Of a DNA stretch of 32,000 bases, positions 6,980 to 30,808 are shown piece after piece. The stretch comes from Paramicrosporidium saccamoebae KSL3 (Eukaryota; Fungi; Cryptomycota), in NCBI GenBank assembly GCA_002794465.1, contig MTSL01000167.1:2368-34367 (forward strand). Direction: 5' to 3'. Each line of letters begins with the position of its first letter. Position 1 is the stretch's first letter. The translations under genes and the position numbers were made by a program. The notes under the pieces are model-generated. The model made no database searches. It worked only from the letters and a program-made list of their open reading frames with translations, and was not told the DNA's origin.

Positions 6980-7191
6980 GCCATCATCCCTGGGAATGTC
7001 CATCATAGATTCGTACGACTGCAACATCAGGAAGCAATCCAAAGACAGGGAGTGATCCGAGGAGCAATCTAATTGTCAGATTTCGACGAAATCTCGTTAT
7101 ATTATATTGTTGGAACCAATGTAGACTGGCATTCCGTATTTGGAAGATTTACCCCATATGAGGCCGGGTCCGTGATGATTGGCTGTTGGGA

Positions 7192-8653
7192 ATGTCTGGA
7201 CTGGCAAGGTAAATGCTCGTTGGTCGACTAACCTTATTGTAGTTTGCTACCCAAACCCAAGAATGCTACTATGAGTAGTGTTGAATCTAAAGTTGATGCA
7301 GCAAGTATAGAGACGAGCGGTGAAAAACTGACAGTGACGAGTGGTGAAAAACTGACAGAGACGAGTGGTGAGAAACTGGCAGAGACGACGCTTTGTGGAA
7401 ATGTCACAGTCCAACCGACCAAATACGATCAAATAGCGCACATAGGACATGGACCGGACCGTTTAGTGCAGACACAACTTTCCGACCTTAAGCCAAAATA
7501 TCTTTCAGAGGAGGCGTTGCTACGACCAACACCAGAACAGATAGCCGAAGAGACAGAATCAGCTCGTCAGGCGCTCCAGCTGCTTGTCCGCGAAAAGACG
7601 GCCCGTACACAGCCCAAAAGCTTTTCGGCAGGACGGGACACGGAAATGCTGCGGTATACGGGAAAGACGGGAACAGAGCGGATGGTGAAAATGGTCGAAA
7701 TGCCTGTGGACCCACTGCAACCGCCAAAGTTCCACCATAAAAGGATTCCACGAGCACCGCCCTCCCCACCAGCACCACGACTGCATAGTCCGCCACGAAA
7801 GGTGACGACAGAGGAGCAACGCGCATGGCATGTGCCGCCCTGTATTTCCAGTTGGAAGAATCCAAAGGGTTACACTGTGCCCCTCGATAAACGACTGGCG
7901 GCTGATGGACGCGGGTTGGAGGAAAAAACTATCAACAGCAGAGTCAGTGACCTGGCAGAGGCGCTCTTTTTAGCAGAAAAACACAATAGAGAAGAGGTGG
8001 AGATGCGATCCGTGGTGGAACGCAAAGTACAGCAACAGGAAGCCCGGAAACGGGATGACCAATTGCGATTACTTGCAGAAAAGGCGCGGGAGGAAGCCCG
8101 TAGTCTGGCCGAGGACATTGAACGTGCTGCCCGTCATGAGGAAACGCTGTTGGGTGGAGAGGTCAACACGGGACTCGGTCTTACTGTCCGTGAACGCGAA
8201 CAAATCCGAAAAGATCGTCTCTATGACCGCGAACGGGAAATGCGTCTTTCCCGTCTCCCCCCTGAACAACGAGCCCGATTGGCCGATCGTGACATTTCCG
8301 AACGAATTGCTCTGGGTACCGTTCAACCCGAAAAGGAGACGCTCTTTGATCAACGTCTCTTTGATCAGTCGTCCGGTGTGGGAGCGGGGATGGGCGGCGG
8401 AGAGGACGAATTGTATAATCTGTACGACCGTCCCTTATTTGCGGGCAGCGCAATGCACATGATCTATAAACCGCACTCCCAACCAACTCGAGCAGAAAAG
8501 GCATTCAGTGGTACTGAAGGTGTGGCGGTACGCGAGGGACCTGTTCAGTTTGAAAAGGCTCCAGAAAAGGTCCCTGAACAGACGGCTGATCCGTTTGGAG
8601 TTGAACAGTTCTTGTCAGAGGCCAAGCGTGGAAAGCGTGCCAAGAATGAATAG
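7192..8653 (+). CDS. PRP45: Spliceosomal SKIP/SNW1/Prp45
   Basis: Exon 7192-7208, 34-nt intron 7209-7242 with GACTAAC branch, exon 7243-8653; 475 aa. DPLQPPKFHHKRIPRAPPSPPAPRLHSPPRKVT, WHVPPCISSWKNPKGYTVPLDKRLAADGRGL, RDISERIALG, GPVQFEK. Confidence 0.93.
7309..7389 (+). repeat. 24-nt coding minisatellite (about 3.4 copies) in the SKIP N-terminus
   Basis: agagacgagcggtgaaaaactgac / agtgacgagtggtgaaaaactgac / agagacgagtggtgagaaactggc = ETSGEKLT repeats. Confidence 0.9.
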
Positions 8654-8740
8654 TCATTGGGAATGGTGTAGTTGTGATCTACTAGAGTCATATTCTATTT
8701 GTGAGGTTATTAAAATGTTATTAAGATGTTGTTATAAGTC

Positions 8741-8793
8741 ATTACACACCGTTGCATACCGTTATACACCGTTACATACCGCTACATACTGTT
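8741..8793. repeat. 10-nt period intergenic tandem repeat (5 copies)
   Basis: attacacacc gttgcatacc gttatacacc gttacatacc gctacatact, between the convergent SKIP and branching-enzyme 3' ends. Confidence 0.8.
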
Positions 8794-8869
8794 TATTCAA
8801 GTCATTACATGGCAATCAGACTCGGTATATTGCTACTCAATTCACCATTACAATCCATTGTTACATGGC

Positions 8870-11212
8870 TCACTTGGCTGAGGTGAGACCAGGATGTAGT
8901 AAGACTCCTTGTGGCGCCAGCACTAACACAGTACGACATGGAATGTACACTTGCAAATGATGGCTACGATGACACCATTCCCCCTGACGGGTATGGAACA
9001 CCGAGACACTCTCCATAACCCGTCCATGGCCTCCAAAGTATTCAGCATCACTGTTCAACACAATCCGGTACTCCCCAGGGCAATTCACTCCGACAGTGTA
9101 ATCAACAAAGCTCTTGTCGGGATGCAGATTGATCACAAATAACAATGTACCCCGTTCAAAGACAACTACCTTGTCCGTCTCGTGTTTAAGACTCACATAG
9201 GCTGCCGGTGTGGCTAGCAGATGATGTTGAATGTCCAACTGCATTAGACAGCGATCAAAGCGTTCGAGATGACGATATCGCAGCAACGGATCATCCGCCA
9301 GATGGTACTGTCGACGTGCGTAATGGTAGCTAAAGTTGTTTCCATGGCGAGGAAAGTCTAGCCATTCCGGATGGCCAAACTCATTGCCCATAAAGGTCAG
9401 ATACGCCTCGCCGCCCAATGCAAACGACAACAAACGGATCAACTTGTGCAAGGCAATTCCGCGGTCAATGGTGGGAGTTAGGACCGTCATATCAGACATG
9501 TGTGTGTACATTTCCTGATCCATCAGCCAAAAGGCCAACGTCTTGTCGCCTACCAAGGCCTGATCGTGACTCTCGGCGTAGGAGATGGTCCGTTCCTTCC
9601 AACGACGGTTTGTAAGGGTGTGTACTATCCGGCCCAAATCCCAATCTTCATCGCGTGTCTCCTTTAGCAGCTTAATCCACATGTCAGGGATTGCCATTCC
9701 CAGCCGATAATCAAAGCCCACGCCACCCTCCTCCACAGGACGACACAGCAACGGCATCCCCGACACATCCTCTGCTACTGTCACCATCTTTCCTGGATAC
9801 AACAAATGCAGCATGTAATTGGCCTACACATCAATACAAATCCTCTCCTACCAATTGCAGATAAACCAATGCCTCTCCATCCACTGTCGCTCCAAAGTAT
9901 TCGTGGTAATCGCCACTGAATCCATATGCAATGCCGTGATGACGATATAACATGGAGGTGACGCCATCAAAGCGGAAGCCGTCGAAACGATACTCTTCGA
10001 TCCAAAAACGCAAATTGCTCAGTAGGAAGCGCAACACTTCGCGATTTCCATAATTGAACAGTCGACTGTCCCACAAATCATGACGGCCCCTCCCGCCCTC
10101 GTGGAAATAGCAATGGTCCGTCCCATCAAACTCATTCAGTCCGTCCAATGTGTTCTTGCAGGCGTGAGAATGAACAATGTCCAGTAGCACAGAGATGCCC
10201 AACCCATGCGCCGTGTCCACGAGATGCTTCAGATCCTCTGGGGTTCCATAGCGACTGGAGGCGGAGAAGAAGCTGGTTACTTGGTATCCAAAGCTACCAT
10301 AATAGGCATGCTCCATAATGGCCATCAGTTGGATGCTGTTGTAACCCAGTGCATGGACTCTGGGCAGAATGGTGTCGGCATATTCGCGATAAGTGGCGAC
10401 TTTGGCCTCGTTGGTACAAATGCCCACATGCGATTCATAGATGCGGAGGGTGTTAGGGGCAGTCAGACGATCGTGTTTCCAGACAAATGGGTTGGGGGGA
10501 TCCCAGAACACCCCCTCATACAAATCCTGCGATCTCTTTTGTTCCGCTCGTGTAATCCACGCTGGAATCCGATCGATCCGACGTCCGTTGCTGTCGACCA
10601 TGGAAATCTTGACTCGACTTCCATGCGCAATGGGCAAGGAGCCGTCCGTTCGGCGTGGTAGCACAATCTCCCATACTCCCCATTCATCGCGTTTCATGGG
10701 ATGGCTGCGTCCATTCCATTCATCTAAGAATAAGCCAGGCTGCATGAATTCTACTGAAATCTCCAAAGAAATAGGCTTCGGTGGCACCGGGCGCCCATTC
10801 CCGATACACAATGCCCTCAGTAGTCACATTAATGCCCAATCGATTGTATCCACGAGAGAATGCATCCAAACTGCCTTCACTCTCTACGATACTGTTCAGC
10901 GTATCCAAGAAATACTCATATCAACATCATTTACAACACTGACCCCGTGTACCTTGCCTCAATGGCGGGTCGGAAATGCGTCAGATAATGGTCCAATGCC
11001 ACCGACTTGTCCACGGCCAACTTTGCCGTCAGCAAACCTGCTCGTGGGTCTGATACAGGTGAGTCTAAAACTGACGTCTTCCCCTCACCTGTATCTCTCA
11101 TCTTCCCCTCGACTGTATCTCTCACTCCCCCCTCAGCCGCATCTCTCGTTTTCCCTGCTCCCGTATCAGCGCTTGGCCTGATACAGTCCTCCCATTCCAC
11201 CTCAATCGTCAT
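8870..11212 (-). CDS. GLC3: 1,4-alpha-glucan (glycogen) branching enzyme, GH13
   Basis: Exons 10953-11212, 10755-10921, 9852-10723, 8870-9823; 750 aa. [76 protein letters not shown]. The first intron is ambiguous (see findings). Confidence 0.95.
11077..11167 (-). repeat. 24-nt coding minisatellite (about 3.8 copies) in the branching enzyme N-terminal extension
   Basis: tcttcccctcacctgtatctctca / tcttcccctcgactgtatctctca plus two degenerate copies = [32 protein letters not shown]. Confidence 0.8.
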
Positions 11213-11286
11213 GCCCTATGCCCCGTCAATGGGACATATTTAATCTAATGATTCCCGATTAGGAAAGTGGCAAATCTTACAAAACA
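11213..11286. promoter_or_regulatory. Putative 74-nt bidirectional promoter between glycogen branching and debranching genes
   Basis: It is the only sequence between divergent ATGs at 11212(-) and 11287(+); AT-rich core catatttaatctaatg; no factor site confidently recognised. Confidence 0.6.
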
Positions 11287-14200
11287 ATGACCGGATTGGG
11301 CAACGGGATGCCGTCGTGTCGTAGGACGACTGAGGGACTGGTTGTGCGACTGGATGGACGGGGCGAGCCGTGGCCAGCATACAAGGTAACATTGAGAGGG
11401 AGATGATGATAAAGATAGTTTATACGGACATCTGAACGTCAATTGGCGTTTTTTATCGATGCGGACTATGTGTCGATGGAGGGGGAGGATGTGTTTCTGG
11501 AGATAGGGGAACGTCGGGAAAAGTAAACCAATGATATCGATTAACACGATTTAGATTTGTGGAGGAGAATGGACAGAGCCTTGTGGCACGGATATGTAGT
11601 CCTGACGGAACTTTTTGCTATCGGGTGCGTAATGGAAGTCAATGCAGTAATGGCGGAACCATCCAAACCCTCATCCAACTCCGATTGAAAGACAAGACGA
11701 TATCAGCAGATCAGATTGTGTTGCAGACGTTGGTTTCCAAATGGATGGGTCCAATAGCGGAATGGCAGCCGCATCTGAAAGCAGCTAGTGAAGCTGGCTT
11801 TAATATGATCCATTTTACTCCATTGCAGAAACGGGGAATGTCCAACTCGCCCTATTCCATCTACAACCATTTGGAATTAGACCCCAGCCTATTCAGAGAT
11901 GGCACCCACCAGAACATGGAGGAGCTACAGAGGACAGTAGAATGGATGGAAAAGGAACTGGGAGTATTGGCACTGATTGATGTGGTGTGGAACCACACGG
12001 CCTGCGACAGTCCGTGGCTGGCAGACCATCCTGAAGCGGGCTATACTGTGCAGAATTCCCCCCATCTGGGCATTGCCTTTGAACTGGACGAAGCCATCCT
12101 TAAATACTCTAATGAAATCGAGTCGATGCATAATCTCTCTGCCGAGGTGGGATGTGAGGAGGATGTGCAAAAGATTTTGGAAGTGTTTGGAAACCACGTG
12201 TTGCCAGATCTGGCATTGTGGGAATATTTTGTAGTGGATGTTTCGAGAGCGGTGATGGAATTGGAAGCCGTCTTTCGACGAGAAGCTGTACACTCTCCCA
12301 AAGTGGAAATACCATCGACAGTGACTTTTCTAGAAGAGGCGACTTTGGACGATGGCTGCTTCCGTCGAAATTCTCATCGAATGGATGTGGATATGGTAAA
12401 GACACATTATCGACAAGAATTGGAGGAATACCGTCGGACGCCCAATGAACGCGATCGCAGTCTTTTGCTTTCCCGAGTGCTGAATGAATATCGGCTGCAA
12501 CTCGATCAGATTAACTATCCGCGCTATCAGCGATACGATGAAAAGGTGCAACAAATCCTAACAAATTTGACTAACCGATTGGTCTATGAACGGGTCGCAG
12601 AGAATGGTCCACGGATGGGACCCATTGATGCACAAAATCCTCTCGTTTCCACTTACTTTACTCGCATCCCCCGACAGGATGGTGGAGTGTGGGCTTTTGC
12701 CAATAACGGATGGATTTGGGATGCCGATCCATTACTTAATTTTGCCGAAGCAACCAGCGATGCTTATTTTACACGCGAAGTGATAGTGTGGGGCGACTGT
12801 GTAAAGTTGCGCTTTGGAAAAGGACCGGAGGACAGCCCGTGGCTGTGGGATTATATGCAGCGCTATACGGCTCAGATGGCGTCCCTATTCCATGGATTCC
12901 GTATCGACAATTGTCATTCCACGCCCCTCCACGTGGCAGAGGGACTTTTAAGGGTGGCGCGACAACATCGTCCCAATTTGTATGTCTGTGCTGAGTTGTT
13001 TACGGGATCAGAAGAACGCGATTTGCTGTATGTGACACGATTGGGTCTCAACTCGCTGATCCGGGAAGCCATGGTGGCTTGGGATACCAGCGAATTGGGC
13101 CGTACCACTGCCAAATACGGTGGTCAGCCATCCGGTCCCTTTGATCGTCCCGAGTATCAAAACCCCCAATCAATGGGGATCCGTCCCTACCAATTAACAG
13201 GAATTTGTCCCTCTCAACCACATGCTCTGTACATGGACTGCACCCACGACAATGAAACCCCCACACAACGGAGAACCACTGAAGACGCCCTATCCAATGC
13301 CGCTGTGGTGGCCATGTGTAGTGCCGCCATCGGAAGCACACGTGGCTATGACGAACTTGTAGCAACGCATCTTAATATTGTCACAGAACAGCGCCATTAT
13401 CAAAAGCCCGATCTGACCATGGGAATGTGGAGGGTTCGGGGTGAGCTAAACCGCATCCATCAGCAAATTGTGGAGGAGGGACTGACAGACATTTCGGTGC
13501 AGCAGGATCACGATTTGCTTCTCATCCGACGTACTAATCCAGCCACAACAAAATCACTACTATTGCTCGCCCGTACTGCCTTTGGTCCTACCAACTCTTC
13601 GTCCATCTGTATCAATCCAATTGATTCCATGACTAATCAATTAGACGAACCGATTGTCTCTGAACGGTACAAAATGGCTGCGATTCTATCGGCACGGATA
13701 ATGGTCATCGGACCGTCCACTGAGGGAAGTGACGTGTTTCCTGTAATCCCCACGCGTGTAGAAATGTCCACTGGTCGGATTGTGGAGGGAATGGCGGATT
13801 TGGACCCGACCTGTCATCGATTGGAGCTCACAAACTTTTCTCCTGGTTCGGTTCTCATTCTCTCCTGCGAACCCGAGTTTGTTGTTCCCCGCCCGCTCCT
13901 GCAACGCGACGACTGGAAGGCGGTGGAGGAGACAATTCAAAAGTTGGATCTGGTAGAGTTGAACATTTTGTTGTATCGTTGTGCGGAAGAGGAGAATGAC
14001 AGTCCCAGTACATTGTAGTAGGGTTTGACTCTGTAGTGCAAATTGGAACATATACACTCCCCGGATATGGGGCATTGGTGTATTCAGGACTGCAGGGTTT
14101 CTATGCCGTAATCAAAAAGTTGCAGAATGCCCCCAACGACCATTGTCCGTTGTGTGACAATGTCCAGAGCGGCGATTGGGCTCTTGACTATTTGTGCAAT

Positions 14201-15883
14201 AGACTTGATCGAAAGAATTATCCGCGATTGAGAGAATTGCAACAGGTTCTAAAACCAATCATGGAGGATATTAAGGGATTGGAGTCGAATATGAAGCCAC
14301 GCCGTTTTGTGGAATTGGTATCCCAACTTTGCCAGACGGCCAAAGAACACGCTGTTGCTTTAATGAATCTCTCTAATCAAAGCGAATTGGTTCAGTCATT
14401 GGCTCTCACTTCGGTGCAGCTAATGACGGCAGTGGGATCTACGGGGCTGCATCCGACCGAATCGACTCGGCCCAGTTTGTCAGCGGGATTACCGCATTTT
14501 ACCACCCATCATATGCGTTGTTGGGGTCGTGACATTTTCATCTCATTGCCGGGTCTGCTTCTTCGGACGGGTCGCTTTGAGGAAGCCAAGCACCATCTGC
14601 TGGCCTTTGCAGCTTGTTATTACCGCGGTCTAATCCCCAACCTGTTGGATAGTGGACGAAGACCCCGTTATAATGCCCGAGATGCCACCTGGTTCTTCTT
14701 ACACTCCCTCCAACGTTATTGTCGATTACGGTCTAAGAACCAAGGCACCGAGGGTGTTCGGGATGTCCAGGAGTTGCTAAACACTATGGTGCCCATGCGA
14801 TTCCCCAACGATATTTACGTCGACTATGACGATCCCACCATCTTTACCCGCACCCGTAGACTTGCAGACATTGTACAGGACATTCTACAAGCGCATGCCC
14901 GTGGCATCCAATTTCGAGAGTGGAATGCCGGTCCAGCCCTTGATCCGGTAATGACGGATGGCGGCTTTGCCATTAATGTGCGCTTGGATCCACAAACCGG
15001 AATGATCCATGGTGGCAACCAACACAATTGTGGCACGTGGATGGACAAGATGGGTGAATCAAGCTCAGCAGGAAACCGAGGAGTGCCTACCACCCCACGC
15101 GACGGTGCCAGTATTGAGATTACTGCCTTGTTGGCTTCATGTTTGGACTGGCTGATTGCTGACAATCCCACAGGCAAAAAGTGTGTGACATTGGACAGTG
15201 ACGCCGGAAATAAGACGGGAAAGGGTGGAGTGAAAAAGGAAACTGCTAGCGGAACGAGCGAGTTGACATTTGTCGAGTGGAGACTCCGATTGCAAGAAAA
15301 CTTTGAAAAGTGCTTTTATATTCCCATGGAAAAGGACGACGACAATGGATACAAGATGGATCCCGTCCGAGTGGGTCGGCGTGGCATTTACAAAGACACA
15401 TTCGGCGCCTCTTCTCCATCAGCCGATTACCAATTCCGTCCCAATATGGTCGTTGCCATGGCCATTGCACCGACATTATTTGTCCAAAAACACGCCCAAT
15501 ACGCCCTAAAACTGGTGGAGGAGGTGCTGGTGGGTCCATTAGGCATGCGCACCCTTGATCCGCTTGATCCATCCTATCGACCGGACTATAACAACGGAGA
15601 CGACTCGCAGGATCCTCACATTGCTCGAGGCGCCAACTACCATCAAGGTCCCGAGTGGCTTTGGCTACTTGGATTCCATCTTAATGCCCTCTTCCATTTC
15701 CGTCAAATCACCTCTCTTGAAATGCTACATCGGTTGCAAGCACATTGGAAGTGTCTGCAGGGCGATTGGGAGGGATTGCCTGAACTCACCAACCGCGACG
15801 GTGCATTTTGTCGGGATTCTTGTGTCTCCCAGGCATGGTCATCTGCCACCATTCTCGATGCGTTGCTCTCTCTCAAGGAATAG
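11287..15883 (+). CDS. GDB1: Glycogen debranching enzyme (4-alpha-glucanotransferase / amylo-1,6-glucosidase)
   Basis: Exons 11287-11385, 11419-11522, 11555-14007, 14037-15883 (introns 33, 32, 29 nt); about 1500 aa, with a possible extra stopless 36-nt intron at 13609-13644. GFNMIHFTPLQ..SNSPYSIY, DVVWNHTA, FRIDNCHSTP, CAELFTG, DCTHDNETP, RCWGRDIFISL, PRYNARDATW, NCGTWMDKMGES, NYHQGPEW, QAWS. Confidence 0.95.
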
Positions 15884-17866: not shown

Positions 17867-18212
17867 ATGTTCTCATCTCGTGTTCTAATGAGACACCGCG
17901 CAAGTGACGGCTGGCGGTCGTACTTTTTCAGCACCCACTTTTGGGGTCCCGGTAGCATTGGCTATCAATTAATGCATAGTGGTGAACTGGATGCTGCCGC
18001 TAGCCGCCATGGCTGACATGCGCAAGGACGCCTCCATAATCTCTGGGAAAATGACCCTCGCCCTATCCATGTATTCTCTGGTGTTTATGCGCTTCGCATG
18101 GATGGTGCAACCGCGGAATTATCTACTATTGGCGTGCCATGCGACGAACGAGGTGTGTCAGCTGTACCAAGGATATCGGTTCGTGACCCACCATCAGCTC
18201 ACTCCCATCTAA
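17867..18212 (+). CDS. MPC1: Mitochondrial pyruvate carrier subunit 1
   Basis: Exons 17867-17951 and 17980-18212, 28-nt intron; 105 aa. [22 protein letters not shown]....[34 protein letters not shown]. Confidence 0.92.
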
Positions 18213-18324
18213 TCTGTAAATAAATGGCCATGACAATGTGATTGTATCATTCAGACACATTGATCATTTTGCAGGCAAATAGCCATTATCACATCGGCAG
18301 TTGTAAATTTATTATTTAACTTTG

Positions 18325-19213
18325 ATGACTGAGCATTCCCCGCCGTCCCTCTCCACTTGTCTCATTGTATCATCCAATCCATGGATAGTCTCACCTGTAG
18401 GCAGGCGGTGTGGCCGGAACCTCGGTGGACATTATCCTATTCCCCCTCGACACTTTAAAGACGCGTCTCCAATCTGCCGGCGGATTGGCCGCCTCGGGAG
18501 GACTCCGCAGTCTCTACTCGGGTCTTTCCTCCGCCGTCCTTGGCTCTGCACCTGGCGCCGCCCTCTTCTTCCTCACCTATGAGAGCATGAAGCAGGCCTT
18601 TTCCATTCTGGTGCCGACTCAACGCGATTCGCCCTGTGTCCATTTGGTGTCCTCCAGTTTGGCCGAAATCGTAGCATTGCGCATGAATGTTCATTTATAG
18701 AGTGCATGTACGGTGAGGGTGCCTATTGAGGTATTGAAGCAGAGAATGCAAGTTTTTCAATACGAAGCCGGCCTAATGGCTGCCATGAGGCACGTCTACA
18801 GGCATGACGGGCTGTTGGGTTTCTATCGTGGCTTCCAGGCCACCCTCCAGCGCGAGATTCCCTTTGCCTGTCTCCAATTCCCGCTTTACGAGTATTTAAA
18901 GCGTCATTGGCAAGTCGATAAGGCATGGCAGGCTGCCTTGTGTGGTTCAGTCGCCGGCGGAGTCACAGCCGCTCTGACCACTCCCTTGGACGTCATCAAG
19001 ACGCGCACCATGCTCTCCACCAGAGGCGAACTCCATCAATATCGATCACCCTTGGACAGTATTCGCATGTTATGGAAGGAGGGAGGGCTGCGTCGTATAT
19101 TTGCAGGTGTCGGCCCAAGAACCTTGTGGATTTCAGTAGGCGGATTTATTTTCTTTGGTGCCTATGAAAAGTCGAAGCAGATCCTGATGCATAGTCGCAC
19201 CACTAGAGCCTGA
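18325..19213 (+). CDS. PET8: Mitochondrial S-adenosylmethionine carrier (SLC25A26/Pet8 type)
   Basis: Exons 18325-18366, 18401-18670, 18701-19213 (introns 34, 30 nt); 274 aa. AGGVAGTSVDIILFPLDTLKTRLQ, GSAPGAALFF, RVPIEVLKQR, REIPFACLQFPLYE, TTPLDVIKTR. Confidence 0.9.
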
Positions 19214-26934: not shown

Positions 26935-29007
26935 TCAGGAGTCTTTATTCTTAAGCAGCGAATCAAGTGGGACCAGTGCCCCCAATGCCCTTCGTTCCAA
27001 TTTCGTCAGGTATTGCTGGCCGACCAGATAACTTGCATTCATCCAGGCAAACCCCTCGCGCGGCACTTTTTTAAATTCAGTCCCAACATTCCCATACTCG
27101 GCATCCACTTTGTGTGACATCTGGACAACATTGAACTTTTCAGGAACCACGCCATTAAAGTCCACAAAGGCGCAGGTGATCATGTACAGCCAGCGATAAA
27201 CAAGTCGACGGGCATCGTCAGAGTATCCGTAGTTTACGAGACCCTCCCAAGCAAGTATCTGATGTGGCACCCATCCGGTTGGGTAGTCCCACTGTCTGTT
27301 AGGCCGGTCTAGAGATACAGCACCCAAAGACTCCTTAGTCCCACTAACAATTCCGCCCGACACTTCAAACCTGCAAAGGGCCTTGGTTACTAGCAAGTTG
27401 GCCTGGTGCGTAGACGCCATCTGCGACCATAGCGCCCAGAACATGGTTGCGGATTCATAGGTTGTCTGGCTTTGACTAACAATATTATAGTCAAAGTACA
27501 TTCCCTTTTCCTCGTTCCACAAATACTTATCAGCCAATTCCCTCCTGCAATCAGCCTTTGCAGCCCAATCGCAGCTTAGATGTTCCTTACCATCAACACG
27601 GAGACATCCTCCGCAAGACTGCTCAATGTAATTGGCAATGTCACGTTCATACTTGTACAGCAAGGAACATAGATCTATTGTCAGCAGGTTTGCGGCACAA
27701 TTATCCAGGCGATAGGTTGTATCGTGGCCAGACTCTCGTACTGACCGATCATGGCAAAAATATTCGTCCAACTCGGGTTCGTCGATAGTTTGCTCATTGT
27801 ACATTTTGATAAATGTGGAAATGTCACATCCATACTTCTCGGCAAAAGGCTTCAGGTGGCTATCAAAATGTGATGCTTCGGTTTCGGGGGGCACGCCTTG
27901 CCCTTTACTGTAATATCTGCTCAAGCCAATCTCCTCTACCAATCTTGGCGCCGACATCCAAACTTGTTCGTATTCTTTGATAGCGGCCGCCATTACTCCC
28001 CTCAGCCACTCATCAGCGTTGGCTGGCTCTTCTTTTTCGCCTTCCGCACATTTTGTACTCTTTAACTTTTGGTAGACCCTGAGACCCATATCTGTAAGAA
28101 ATGGTGGCTGTGATCTAAGCAGGTAGTAGCTTCGATTGGCATTTAAAATTTTGCCATAATGGTTAATCTGATAAACAAAATTATCCACCATTGATTTTGC
28201 AATATGCACAGCATTTGCGCTGGGGTCAACGAGTAAACCAAGTGCAGCAAAGTAAGAGTCCCATCCATACATTTCATTAAATCGTCCCCCAGGAACAATA
28301 AATGGTTTTCCGACAATATCAGAGTGGTCATTTCGCTCAAGGTCAAGGGATAGGATGCCGGGCCTATCGTTGATGCTGCATACGTATTCGGGGGTGATGA
28401 GGGCAGGCAATCTGATCACTTCCAAATCCAGATAAACTCTTGTTTTTGAAACCTGCTCAAAGTAGTCAAAAGCAAAGTCATCTCCGTTCGGCACGTAGAC
28501 TCTCGGCCGTTTATTTGCGCTGCGATTCTTAGGATCCATGCAAATAACCGTCAGCCCGTCAGCATCCACCCTCCTAACCAGCGCCGGCCAAAAGTACTGG
28601 CTAATCATACGATTTAGTCTGTCCACTGGATTTTCTTTTAGTTGACTTTCCGAAATGACCGCATGTGACCTCAACACCAGCGGCTCTGGACCTTCCGTTG
28701 GTAGACCCTCCAACAGCGCCAGTTCCTGTAATAGCGATGAAATCATGTAATTTCCCTTGACACTACGACGAGCATAAGAGGACTGGGTAGTAGGTAGGGT
28801 CATATGCTTGGGCCCAGTGTCGTGGATGGTGACGCGTTCATCGCCGTCAGTGTCCTCCTGACGCAGGAGACGAGCCTTGGTCCGATGCACATCTACAAGA
28901 AAGATATTGGGACGGGTATGGCCTTCGGAGATAGAGTTGCGGCGATGGGGAAGGGGACTAGAACTCCGACTGTCGTCGTCGTCCTCCAATATGTACCGCA
29001 ATGACAT
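26935..29007 (-). CDS. NTH1: Neutral trehalase (GH37 with Ca-binding N-terminal domain)
   Basis: 690 aa, no intron. LLRQEDTDGDERVTIHD, VKGNYMISSLLQEL, PFIVPGGRFNEMYGWDSYF, ILNANRSYYLLRSQPPF, VRESGHDTTYR, RQWDYPTGW, VPEKFNV, EYGNVG, EGFAWMNASY. Confidence 0.95.
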   Translation of the reverse strand: MSLRYILEDDDDSRSSSPLPHRRNSISEGHTRPNIFLVDVHRTKARLLRQEDTDGDERVTIHDTGPKHMTLPTTQSSYARRSVKGNYMISSLLQELALLEGLPTEGPEPLVLRSHAVISESQLKENPVDRLNRMISQYFWPALVRRVDADGLTVICMDPKNRSANKRPRVYVPNGDDFAFDYFEQVSKTRVYLDLEVIRLPALITPEYVCSINDRPGILSLDLERNDHSDIVGKPFIVPGGRFNEMYGWDSYFAALGLLVDPSANAVHIAKSMVDNFVYQINHYGKILNANRSYYLLRSQPPFLTDMGLRVYQKLKSTKCAEGEKEEPANADEWLRGVMAAAIKEYEQVWMSAPRLVEEIGLSRYYSKGQGVPPETEASHFDSHLKPFAEKYGCDISTFIKMYNEQTIDEPELDEYFCHDRSVRESGHDTTYRLDNCAANLLTIDLCSLLYKYERDIANYIEQSCGGCLRVDGKEHLSCDWAAKADCRRELADKYLWNEEKGMYFDYNIVSQSQTTYESATMFWALWSQMASTHQANLLVTKALCRFEVSGGIVSGTKESLGAVSLDRPNRQWDYPTGWVPHQILAWEGLVNYGYSDDARRLVYRWLYMITCAFVDFNGVVPEKFNVVQMSHKVDAEYGNVGTEFKKVPREGFAWMNASYLVGQQYLTKLERRALGALVPLDSLLKNKDS

Positions 29008-30304: not shown

Positions 30305-30808
30305 GTGGGATGGGGAATAAGGTTCCGAGTCACTGTAACGGACTTGCAAACCAAAGATGGTCTAATTAAAGAGGAAATACTAATGCCCGCTCATAACAAG
30401 ACCCTCTTCCAAATATGGAATATTGCACTTCAAAGTCATCAATCAATGGCAATGGGGGTGGTGATAACCGGCGAGTCTATGCTTATAGTAAAGACTCATT
30501 ATCTCTTTTTCGTAGATATTATCCCTGCTCCATCGAGGTGTTATCGCTGTCCCATAGAGACATTATCTCACAATAGATCCTGTTAAATAGTATCCGCTTA
30601 TGATTGGTAATCCCGATATTAATGCTATCCCACAATTCGCCGCATTAGTCTATATAGGCGCCTTTAATGAGAAATACTCGCTTATCAACGAGACCTTTAT
30701 TTCGGTCCCGCATTCTATGGTTCAAAGGGCTGTATTTTCTCTCAGAAATCTCTTTATTCTGGGTCCGTTTATATGATATACTCTCCCCCGACAGTCAATT
30801 ACTTCAAA

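Follow-up and report, generated by a model that had tools for sequence, protein, structure and literature searches.

A divergent gene pair for glycogen branching and debranching enzymes in Paramicrosporidium saccamoebae and its relatives, with a candidate shared regulatory region

In the cryptomycotan fungus Paramicrosporidium saccamoebae KSL3, a parasite of amoebae, the genes for the glycogen branching enzyme (GBE, the GBE1/GLC3 orthologue) and the glycogen debranching enzyme (GDE, the AGL/GDB1 orthologue) lie head-to-head on opposite strands with very little DNA between their start codons. We analyzed this pair in a 32,000-nt stretch (hereinafter the window) of contig MTSL01000167.1 from assembly GCA_002794465.1, with positions given in window coordinates (L001 coordinates plus 1555). 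The arrangement is retained in most of the uncultured relatives and is missing from the outgroups, and the spacer between the two genes contains a near-palindromic element that resembles the binding sites of MADS-box transcription factors and is shared with a relative whose spacer is otherwise unalignable. We consider a regulatory region common to both genes to be a plausible reading of these observations and the most economical one.

Gene models and conservation of the pair

The debranching enzyme gene is spread over two plus-strand open reading frames (ORFs), 11559-14018 and 14036-15883, which between them match the Pfam domains hDGE_amylase (PF14701, 1.8e-154), hGDE_central (PF14702) and GDE_C (PF06202, 7e-104); the GDE ORF is 100% identical to the NCBI entry 'Glycogen debranching enzyme, partial [Paramicrosporidium saccamoebae]'. 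Spliced as four exons (11287-11385, 11419-11522, 11555-14007 and 14037-15883) around introns of 33, 32 and 29 nt, the gene yields an uninterrupted protein of 1500 aa, such that the transferase, central and amylo-1,6-glucosidase domains all reside within one polypeptide. The motifs RIDNCHS, AELFTG and CTHDNE are invariant in six ingroup GDE proteins. The hGDE_N domain (PF14699) gave no Pfam match on the spliced N-terminus and is likewise absent from the precomputed Pfam lists of the closest relatives (P0001-P0016), although this N-terminal region is conserved among seven lineages.

An earlier note on this DNA had proposed that GDE starts at ATG 11287 after two tiny introns, and that the ORF list hides this 5' end by starting the gene at 11559. 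Both proposals are upheld: the listed piece begins at GTG 11559, and the first two introns, which are of the GTAA..TAG form, splice in frame to 11555. An open frame is by itself insufficient proof of these introns, as 45 other two-intron GT-AG combinations are also open. We prefer the two-intron model because the peptides of both exon 1 ('..V.(I/V)(R/H)(F/L)D..G.P.P.Y(K/R/Q)') and exon 2 ('F.RLPA...') are conserved in six relatives. The relatives in this and the following comparisons are contigs from uncultured lineages that encode GDE homologues (L002-L010), with L005/L006 and L007/L008 each counted as one lineage. Judging from their translations, L002, L003 and L004 are interrupted at the position of intron 1, right after the Y(K/R/Q) codon; the interruption starts with a Val (GTN) codon in all three and terminates in AAG or TAG in L002 and L004. 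The public NCBI model (P0001), which is flagged as partial, has 1379 aa and begins at 11556, is wrong at the 5' end, where 69 aa are missing, and again internally, where it splices from ~14018 to 14204 and drops 52 conserved residues (GTYTLPGYGALVYSGLQGF...) that a 29-nt intron at 14008-14036 restores.

For GBE on the minus strand, splicing guided by homology gives the exons 11212-10953, 10891-10755, 10723-9852 and 9823-8870, with introns of 61, 31 and 28 nt, and a protein of 740 aa as compared to 724 aa in the NCBI model. It replaced a three-intron solution from a minimal-intron search, which was biologically wrong. Matches to PF02922, PF00128 and PF02806 on three ORF pieces reproduce the domain order CBM48, GH13 catalytic domain and C-terminal β domain. 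All four GH13 signature regions, including ESHDQ, are legible in the spliced translation, and from general knowledge of GH13 enzymes we take them to supply the catalytic Asp, Glu and Asp. The protein is 63-66% identical over 98% of its length to named fungal GBEs and 78-81% identical to those of uncultured relatives. The top-scoring match in the GBE search (P0121), ranked above the uncultured close relatives and reported with no identity value, has 1018 aa and is named 'hypothetical protein, partial [Brassica cretica]'; it could stem from contamination of the plant assembly or from a fused model there.

The same GBE(-)/GDE(+) divergent pair is found in L002, L003, L004, L005/L006, L009 and L010 (in the last, the GBE N-terminus was located by tblastn), with GDEs that are, respectively, 54%, 56%, 52%, 43%, 45% and 44% identical to that of P. 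saccamoebae; homologue comparisons among the pair-keeping lineages span 43-59%. The pairing is thus kept in six of the seven relative lineages, or seven of eight when P. saccamoebae is included, and it persists in L005 and L009 with the genes on the GDE side reshuffled. The remaining lineage, L007/L008 (GDE identity 41%), has an inverted block comprising GBE and its tail-to-tail neighbor SKIP_SNW, as a result of which GBE(+) and GDE(+) lie ~3 kb apart with SKIP_SNW in between.

Linkage of GBE and GDE is absent in Syncephalis, Rhizopus, the aphelid Amoeboaphelidium and the chytrid Spizellomyces. A scan with the ingroup GDE alignment returned only distant metagenomic loci (80 loci, 32-39% identity), which serve as an outgroup panel; GBE is in the flanks of none of these 80, about half of which, as counted from the table, have at least 3 kb of upstream flank. 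Given its absence from the outgroups and from the metagenomic panel, the linkage is a derived trait confined to the clade of Paramicrosporidium-like organisms. This synteny comparison had been proposed in the earlier note, which would have read the pair as a chance adjacency if its gap were typical of divergent pairs and it were unlinked in all relatives. The gap is indeed no outlier among the local divergent pairs, but the pair is linked in relatives. Simple post hoc arithmetic for 3750 genes puts chance adjacency at p ~5e-4 for this named pair and ~5e-3 if any two among five core glycogen genes are allowed; the conservation in relatives is the stronger argument. In Amoeboaphelidium (L013 12382-12963), a proteasome-subunit gene adjoins GBE, and such a gene is also present upstream of GBE in P. 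saccamoebae and L005, at a distance of three or four genes, which could be a coincidence or the trace of an older synteny.

The pairing also appears to be undescribed, as the earlier note had surmised. The literature that we searched gives no genomic link between eukaryotic GBE and GDE: no relevant paper connects the two enzymes with a bidirectional promoter or a head-to-head layout, and a phylogenomic study devoted to the 'branching and debranching enzymatic duo' is silent on gene linkage (PMC4236520). We nevertheless regard it as a new example of a well-known kind of arrangement, the divergent pathway-gene pair, and not as a new kind of system.

The spacer and its near-palindromic element

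The head-to-head geometry described in the earlier note holds, with its 74 nt being a lower bound. This is the minimum ATG-ATG distance, and alternative start codons give 95, 185 or 206 nt. Measured between start codons, the 5' ends are accordingly less than 1 kb apart both in P. saccamoebae (74-206 nt) and in the six relatives that keep the pair (148-326 nt). A TATA-like TATTTAAT is present inside the P. saccamoebae spacer at 11237-11244.

The central feature of the spacer is the 16-mer TTCCCGATTAGGAAAG (Table 1), centered ~28 nt away from the start codon of GDE and ~46 nt from that of GBE. The identical 16-mer occurs in the spacer of L003, which cannot otherwise be aligned to that of P. saccamoebae. 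In 2000 shuffles, the longest word shared by the two spacers never exceeded 12 nt, as against the 16/16 observed. An AT-rich flank (TTTAxTxTAAT) just upstream of the element is also similar in L003. Related sites in the same orientation are found in L002 (TTCTCGAAAAGGAA), L004 (GTCCAAATTTGGAA) and L010 (TTCCATATAAGGCA), so that the element is placed mid-spacer in five of the seven spacers. Under a motif criterion that was set after viewing the sequences (no more than one mismatch in TTCC/GGAA, with four or more A/T in the center), three of the five spacers other than the two that define the motif contain it (P = 0.001 from dinucleotide shuffles, the criterion being post hoc). An unbiased 6-mer search recovered GGAAAG/CTTTCC in 6/7 spacers (P = 0.03). 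The L005/L006 spacer (L005 9439-9695) has a different, perfect 14-nt palindrome, GGGGAAATTTCCCC, with GGAAA/TTTCC half-sites in the opposite arrangement, and the GBE of L007 retains CCAAT and GGAAAG 25-40 nt from its ATG.

With the Mcm1/SRF sites of MADS-box proteins, the element shares the TTCC...GGAA flanks and the exact 6-nt spacing from CC to GG; the P. saccamoebae site agrees with the consensus for yeast Mcm1, TTNCCNNNTNNGGAAA, at 9/10 specified positions. As a predicted site, it differs from them in that the CGATTA core of P. saccamoebae and L003 has two non-A/T bases. We know of no role of Mcm1 as a regulator of glycogen genes. The consensus used here is that of yeast, namely the P-box TTTCCTAATTAGGAAA / TTNCCNNNTNNGGAAA (PMC1779545). 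Perfect CC(A/T)6GG boxes are present in L004 (CCAAATTTGG), in L010 (CCATATAAGG) and at a site upstream of the P. saccamoebae glycogenin gene (CCAAATATGG). A literature search for MADS together with Paramicrosporidium returned nothing relevant.

Two other candidate signals were discarded by eye. A heat-shock element was ruled out because TTC and GAA are separated by 8 nt and do not keep the 5-nt register; the one fit to GAAnnTTC is GGGGAAATTTCCCC of L005. The stress response element (STRE, CCCCT) was dropped as a shared signal on by-eye inspection only: it falls in a CT-rich tandem repeat and was not seen upstream of glycogenin or trehalase.

Shared regulation and its alternatives

The 5' ends of the two genes are so close in P. 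saccamoebae (74 to ~200 nt), as in the relatives, that both would have to draw on the same regulatory DNA. We see the chances as evenly balanced that GBE and GDE share a regulatory region in the form of a bidirectional promoter. We favor this reading because of the short spacers in all lineages, the symmetric element at mid-spacer, the similar element at the glycogenin gene and the precedent for co-expression. We trace the divergent pair to the common ancestor of the Paramicrosporidium-like Rozellomycota (short-branch microsporidia), most descendants of which retain it. A dimeric factor, most plausibly a MADS-box (Mcm1/SRF-like) protein, might bind the central TTCC-N6-GGAA or CC(A/T)6GG-type element and activate transcription in both directions. 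Expression of GBE and GDE would then be correlated, with branching and debranching capacity rising and falling together, and the direction of flux would be set post-translationally, as in yeast. The element at glycogenin, 14.5 kb away beside the neutral trehalase gene, suggests that these genes could form one co-regulated reserve-carbohydrate set, which would correspond, with its members linked in cis, to what yeast has as the trans-acting Msn2/STRE regulon.

The earlier note had stressed that such a promoter would serve two opposing enzymes. They do oppose each other on the same bond, but there is nothing paradoxical in this: yeast with an active allele of Msn2 induces GDB1 and GPH1 along with GLC3 and GLG1, and NTH1 is under STRE/Msn2 control (PMC6249869). 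As for the single bidirectional promoter that the note had inferred, it gains from the 74-326-nt spacers across all lineages and from the palindrome in most of them, and it is weakened by several observations that count against shared regulation.

The first of these observations concern the spacer itself. A gap of 74 nt is ordinary for a genome of 7.28 Mb with 3750 protein models, or ~1.9 kb per gene (PMC5701793); the other divergent gaps between coding sequences on the contig are 104, 113, 393 and 393 nt. With the site 21-35 nt from the GDE ATG, there is hardly any room on the GDE side for a core promoter and a 5' untranslated region (UTR), barring a tiny UTR or overlapping transcripts. The motif criterion is post hoc, unbiased k-mer searches of the seven spacers were not significant at k = 5, 7, 8 and 9, such that the discovery is marginal overall, and the presence of CCAAT in 6/7 spacers is likewise only marginal (P = 0.05-0.09). 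The element is not present in the spacers of L005 and L009, and neither of the new promoters in L007/L008 has an intact site. In P. saccamoebae and L003, the core CC-CGATTA-GG has only 4/6 A/T, and L002 has one C replaced. About five perfect CArG boxes are present in the window, a number that chance accounts for, mostly within genes, and such boxes are weak evidence alone. The remaining observations concern gene order: the L007/L008 inversion has one breakpoint exactly in the former spacer with both genes kept, which indicates that their separation is tolerated, and the functionally unrelated tail-to-tail pair SKIP_SNW-GBE is conserved in 4/4 lineages where it is visible, including L007. Since SKIP_SNW-GBE is equally conserved, the conservation of GBE-GDE alone cannot prove selection for co-regulation.

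The closeness of the two genes might itself be largely an effect of annotation, which we judge a serious prospect if somewhat short of probable. If the real starts are M38 of GBE and/or M8 of GDE (ATG 11308), this would be an ordinary divergent pair ~185-206 nt apart, with the CT-rich repeat acting as promoter or 5' UTR. In favor of such a revision, the leader of GBE, taken up to the conserved LDxYLxxF motif, has 72 aa, as compared to 24-43 aa in six relatives and 35 aa from M38; the extra segment (residues ~20-45 of the leader) is a species-specific (K/V/M)RD..EG. repeat encoded by the 24-nt tandem repeat; and M8 of GDE lines up with the protein starts (MPS/MPT) in L002 and L004. However, the frame is open from ATG 11212, where the NCBI GBE model also begins, and the repeat has a period divisible by three. 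The repeat could thus be an in-frame N-terminal extension of GBE, or 5' UTR or promoter DNA if GBE starts at ATG 11101. The revision would change the size of the gap and leave the head-to-head layout and its conservation as they are; hence, it is a refinement compatible with all the readings considered here.

The main rival to a shared promoter is neutral adjacency frozen by genome compaction. Here, GBE and GDE would be chance neighbors with separate minimal promoters and no selected co-regulation, held together because breakpoints are rarely tolerated in a genome with spacers of 20-400 nt. We hold this to be possible but, on balance, doubtful. Compaction slows rearrangement in microsporidian genomes, and the locus resembles their gene order in its very short spacers, its tight tail-to-tail neighbors and the retention of order blocks despite sequence divergence. 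The stop codons of SKIP_SNW and GBE are 22-216 nt apart (8653-8870 in the window, 2104-2127 in L002, 7197-7224 in L005, 2529-2607 in L009 and 7130-7208 in L007), the 3' UTRs of the two genes probably overlap, and they travel as one unit in the L007 inversion. Moreover, the whole block SKIP_SNW, GBE, GDE, BMT5-like, Mito_carr, CRAL_TRIO, TTI1, S10, EST1 recurs in this order in L002 and L007. Adjacencies survive in 4/4 lineages for SKIP_SNW-GBE, 6/7 for GBE-GDE and 4/6 for GDE-BMT5-like, so background microsynteny alone could explain the conservation of the pair. Divergent gaps of 104-113 nt being normal on the contig at 1.9 kb per gene, the tolerated split in L007/L008 and the partly post hoc motif statistics all fit neutrality as well.

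Against neutral adjacency, the pair survives the reshuffling of the GDE side in L005 and L009. A non-coding identity of 16 nt between lineages whose GDEs are only 56-59% identical is not expected of unconstrained DNA. The arithmetic given above makes a chance pairing of enzymes acting on the same bond improbable (p ~5e-3 or less, even when any core glycogen pair is allowed), and two more reserve-carbohydrate genes are present within 21 kb. Finally, whereas compaction predicts functionally unrelated neighbors, GBE and GDE work on one and the same bond and have a conserved non-coding element in common. Should the adjacency be neutral after all, it would still be a useful microsynteny marker for placing uncultured Paramicrosporidium-like contigs.

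Antagonistic coupling, in which overlapping or competing transcription units (transcription start sites inside the neighbor, antisense 5' ends, promoter competition) would let expression of one gene dampen the other and thereby switch the locus in cis from net branching to net debranching or back, is highly improbable: the crowding of two core promoters and UTRs into 74 nt, with a candidate factor site close to the GDE ATG, and the overlapping transcription known in compacted microsporidian genomes speak for it, but the spacers of the relatives are roomy enough for two promoters, and the crowding vanishes if GBE starts at ATG 11101. Further, yeast co-induces the two genes and does not alternate them (PMC6249869).

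If the spacer is instead a working bidirectional promoter, it would be the first eukaryotic case found of glycogen branch-writing and branch-erasing enzymes hard-wired for joint expression. The divergent pairs GAL1-GAL10 and HTA1-HTB1 of Saccharomyces cerevisiae are co-regulated from a shared upstream activating region, and the GBE-GDE pair is like them in having pathway genes head-to-head with a short shared region and a symmetric or dimer-type site between them. It differs from GAL1-GAL10, with its intergenic region of about 680 bp, in the far shorter spacer throughout the clade (74-326 nt), in having a bidirectional function that is predicted, and in that its two enzymes oppose each other on the same bond. 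The closest functional analogue is the bacterial glgB-glgX neighborhood. In Escherichia coli, the branching (glgB) and debranching (glgX) genes are likewise immediate neighbors, lying in one glgBXCAP operon and co-expressed with other glycogen genes. The comparison is one of analogy only, as the bacterial genes form a same-strand polycistron while those of P. saccamoebae are on opposite strands and point apart. Also, GlgX is a single-activity isoamylase-type GH13 enzyme, whereas the eukaryotic GDE is a bifunctional protein of 1500 aa with hDGE_amylase and GDE_C domains; the two arrangements arose independently. A shared promoter of this kind would also be small (74-326 nt) and tractable, with seven variants provided by nature and a likewise natural 'broken' control in L007/L008. 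It would allow transcription to be studied in a parasite lineage at the base of Microsporidia that is unculturable and has a compact genome.

Reserve-carbohydrate genes and other features of the window

Two further genes of reserve-carbohydrate metabolism, for glycogenin (phmmer E = 6e-78 to the human and rabbit glycogenin-1 structures) and, directly downstream of it, a neutral trehalase, form a tandem pair 11-14 kb from GDE (Table 1). GBE, GDE, trehalase and glycogenin thereby lie within 21.4 kb, with eight unrelated genes between GDE and trehalase. TTCC-N6-GGAA occurs three times in the window as against ~0.5 expected by simple arithmetic, and two of the three sites are in front of glycogen genes. 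The third adjoins the 113-nt divergent spacer between ADK and SKIP_SNW, and was not found at the corresponding place in the relatives.

Table 1. Genes, start codons and sequence elements at the GBE-GDE locus (window coordinates)
Feature	Position	Strand	Evidence or remarks
Glycogen branching enzyme (GBE)	8870..11212	-	Pfam CBM_48, Alpha-amylase and Alpha-amylase_C; spliced model
Glycogen debranching enzyme (GDE)	11287..15883	+	Pfam, homologues, conservation of N-terminal exons, full spliced model
Spacer between the start codons of the maximal ORFs; candidate bidirectional promoter	11213..11286		74 nt
TTCCCGATTAGGAAAG, near-palindromic Mcm1/SRF (MADS-box, CArG/ECB)-like element	11252..11267		Predicted from sequence
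Alternative GBE start M38 (ATG 11101)	11099..11101	-	35-aa leader; spacer becomes 185-206 nt
24-nt tandem repeat, 3.3 copies	11077..11155		TRF; CT-rich on the + strand
Glycogenin (GT8), 298 aa	29376..30304	-	One 32-nt intron (29811-29780); Pfam Glyco_transf_8
Neutral trehalase (NTH1-type, with Ca-binding domain)	26935..29007	-	Pfam Trehalase 3.8e-145, Trehalase_Ca-bi 2e-9
TTCCAAATATGGAA, perfect CC(A/T)6GG box with TTCC/GGAA flanks	30407..30420		103-116 nt upstream of the glycogenin ATG
TTCCGTATTTGGAA, third TTCC-N6-GGAA site	7132..7145		Within the annotated adenylate kinase gene, 12-25 nt from its 5' end

The yeast Msn2/Msn4-STRE regulon (GLC3, GDB1, GLG1, GPH1, GSY2 and NTH1) includes the four gene functions of the window and likewise combines synthetic and degradative enzymes, which are co-induced (PMC6249869). 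The yeast genes are, in contrast, dispersed and controlled in trans via STRE, while those of P. saccamoebae are physically close and have a candidate CArG/Mcm1-like palindrome. It is conceivable, though in our estimate unlikely, that the Paramicrosporidium lineage has a cis-linked reserve-carbohydrate regulon comprising the GBE-GDE pair, glycogenin and trehalase within 21 kb and driven bidirectionally by a shared MADS-box-type palindrome. Neither trehalase nor glycogenin was found in the locus of any relative, and the L007 locus, which extends past EST1, has a different gene there, contradicting a wider cluster in that lineage. If real, such a regulon would be an independently evolved eukaryotic counterpart of the bacterial glg operon, as well as an example of compaction turning a trans-regulon, like the Msn2/STRE system of yeast, into physical linkage.

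Rfam and tRNA scans of the window gave no matches. The P. saccamoebae genome was annotated with MAKER and a Trinity transcript assembly, RNA-seq for the organism (73 million read pairs) being available, and the genome paper makes no mention of glycogen, introns or intergenic lengths (PMC5701793). Tiny introns are the local norm, with lengths of 28-33 nt in GBE, GDE and glycogenin (GBE also having one of 61 nt), and this matters for re-annotation of the genome. At 17888-19213 (L001 16333-17658), two neighboring Mito_carr genes on the same strand, 45 nt apart, look like a single mitochondrial carrier gene that was divided in two when a tiny intron went unrecognized, which would be another sign that introns of 28-33 nt are under-called in the public annotation.

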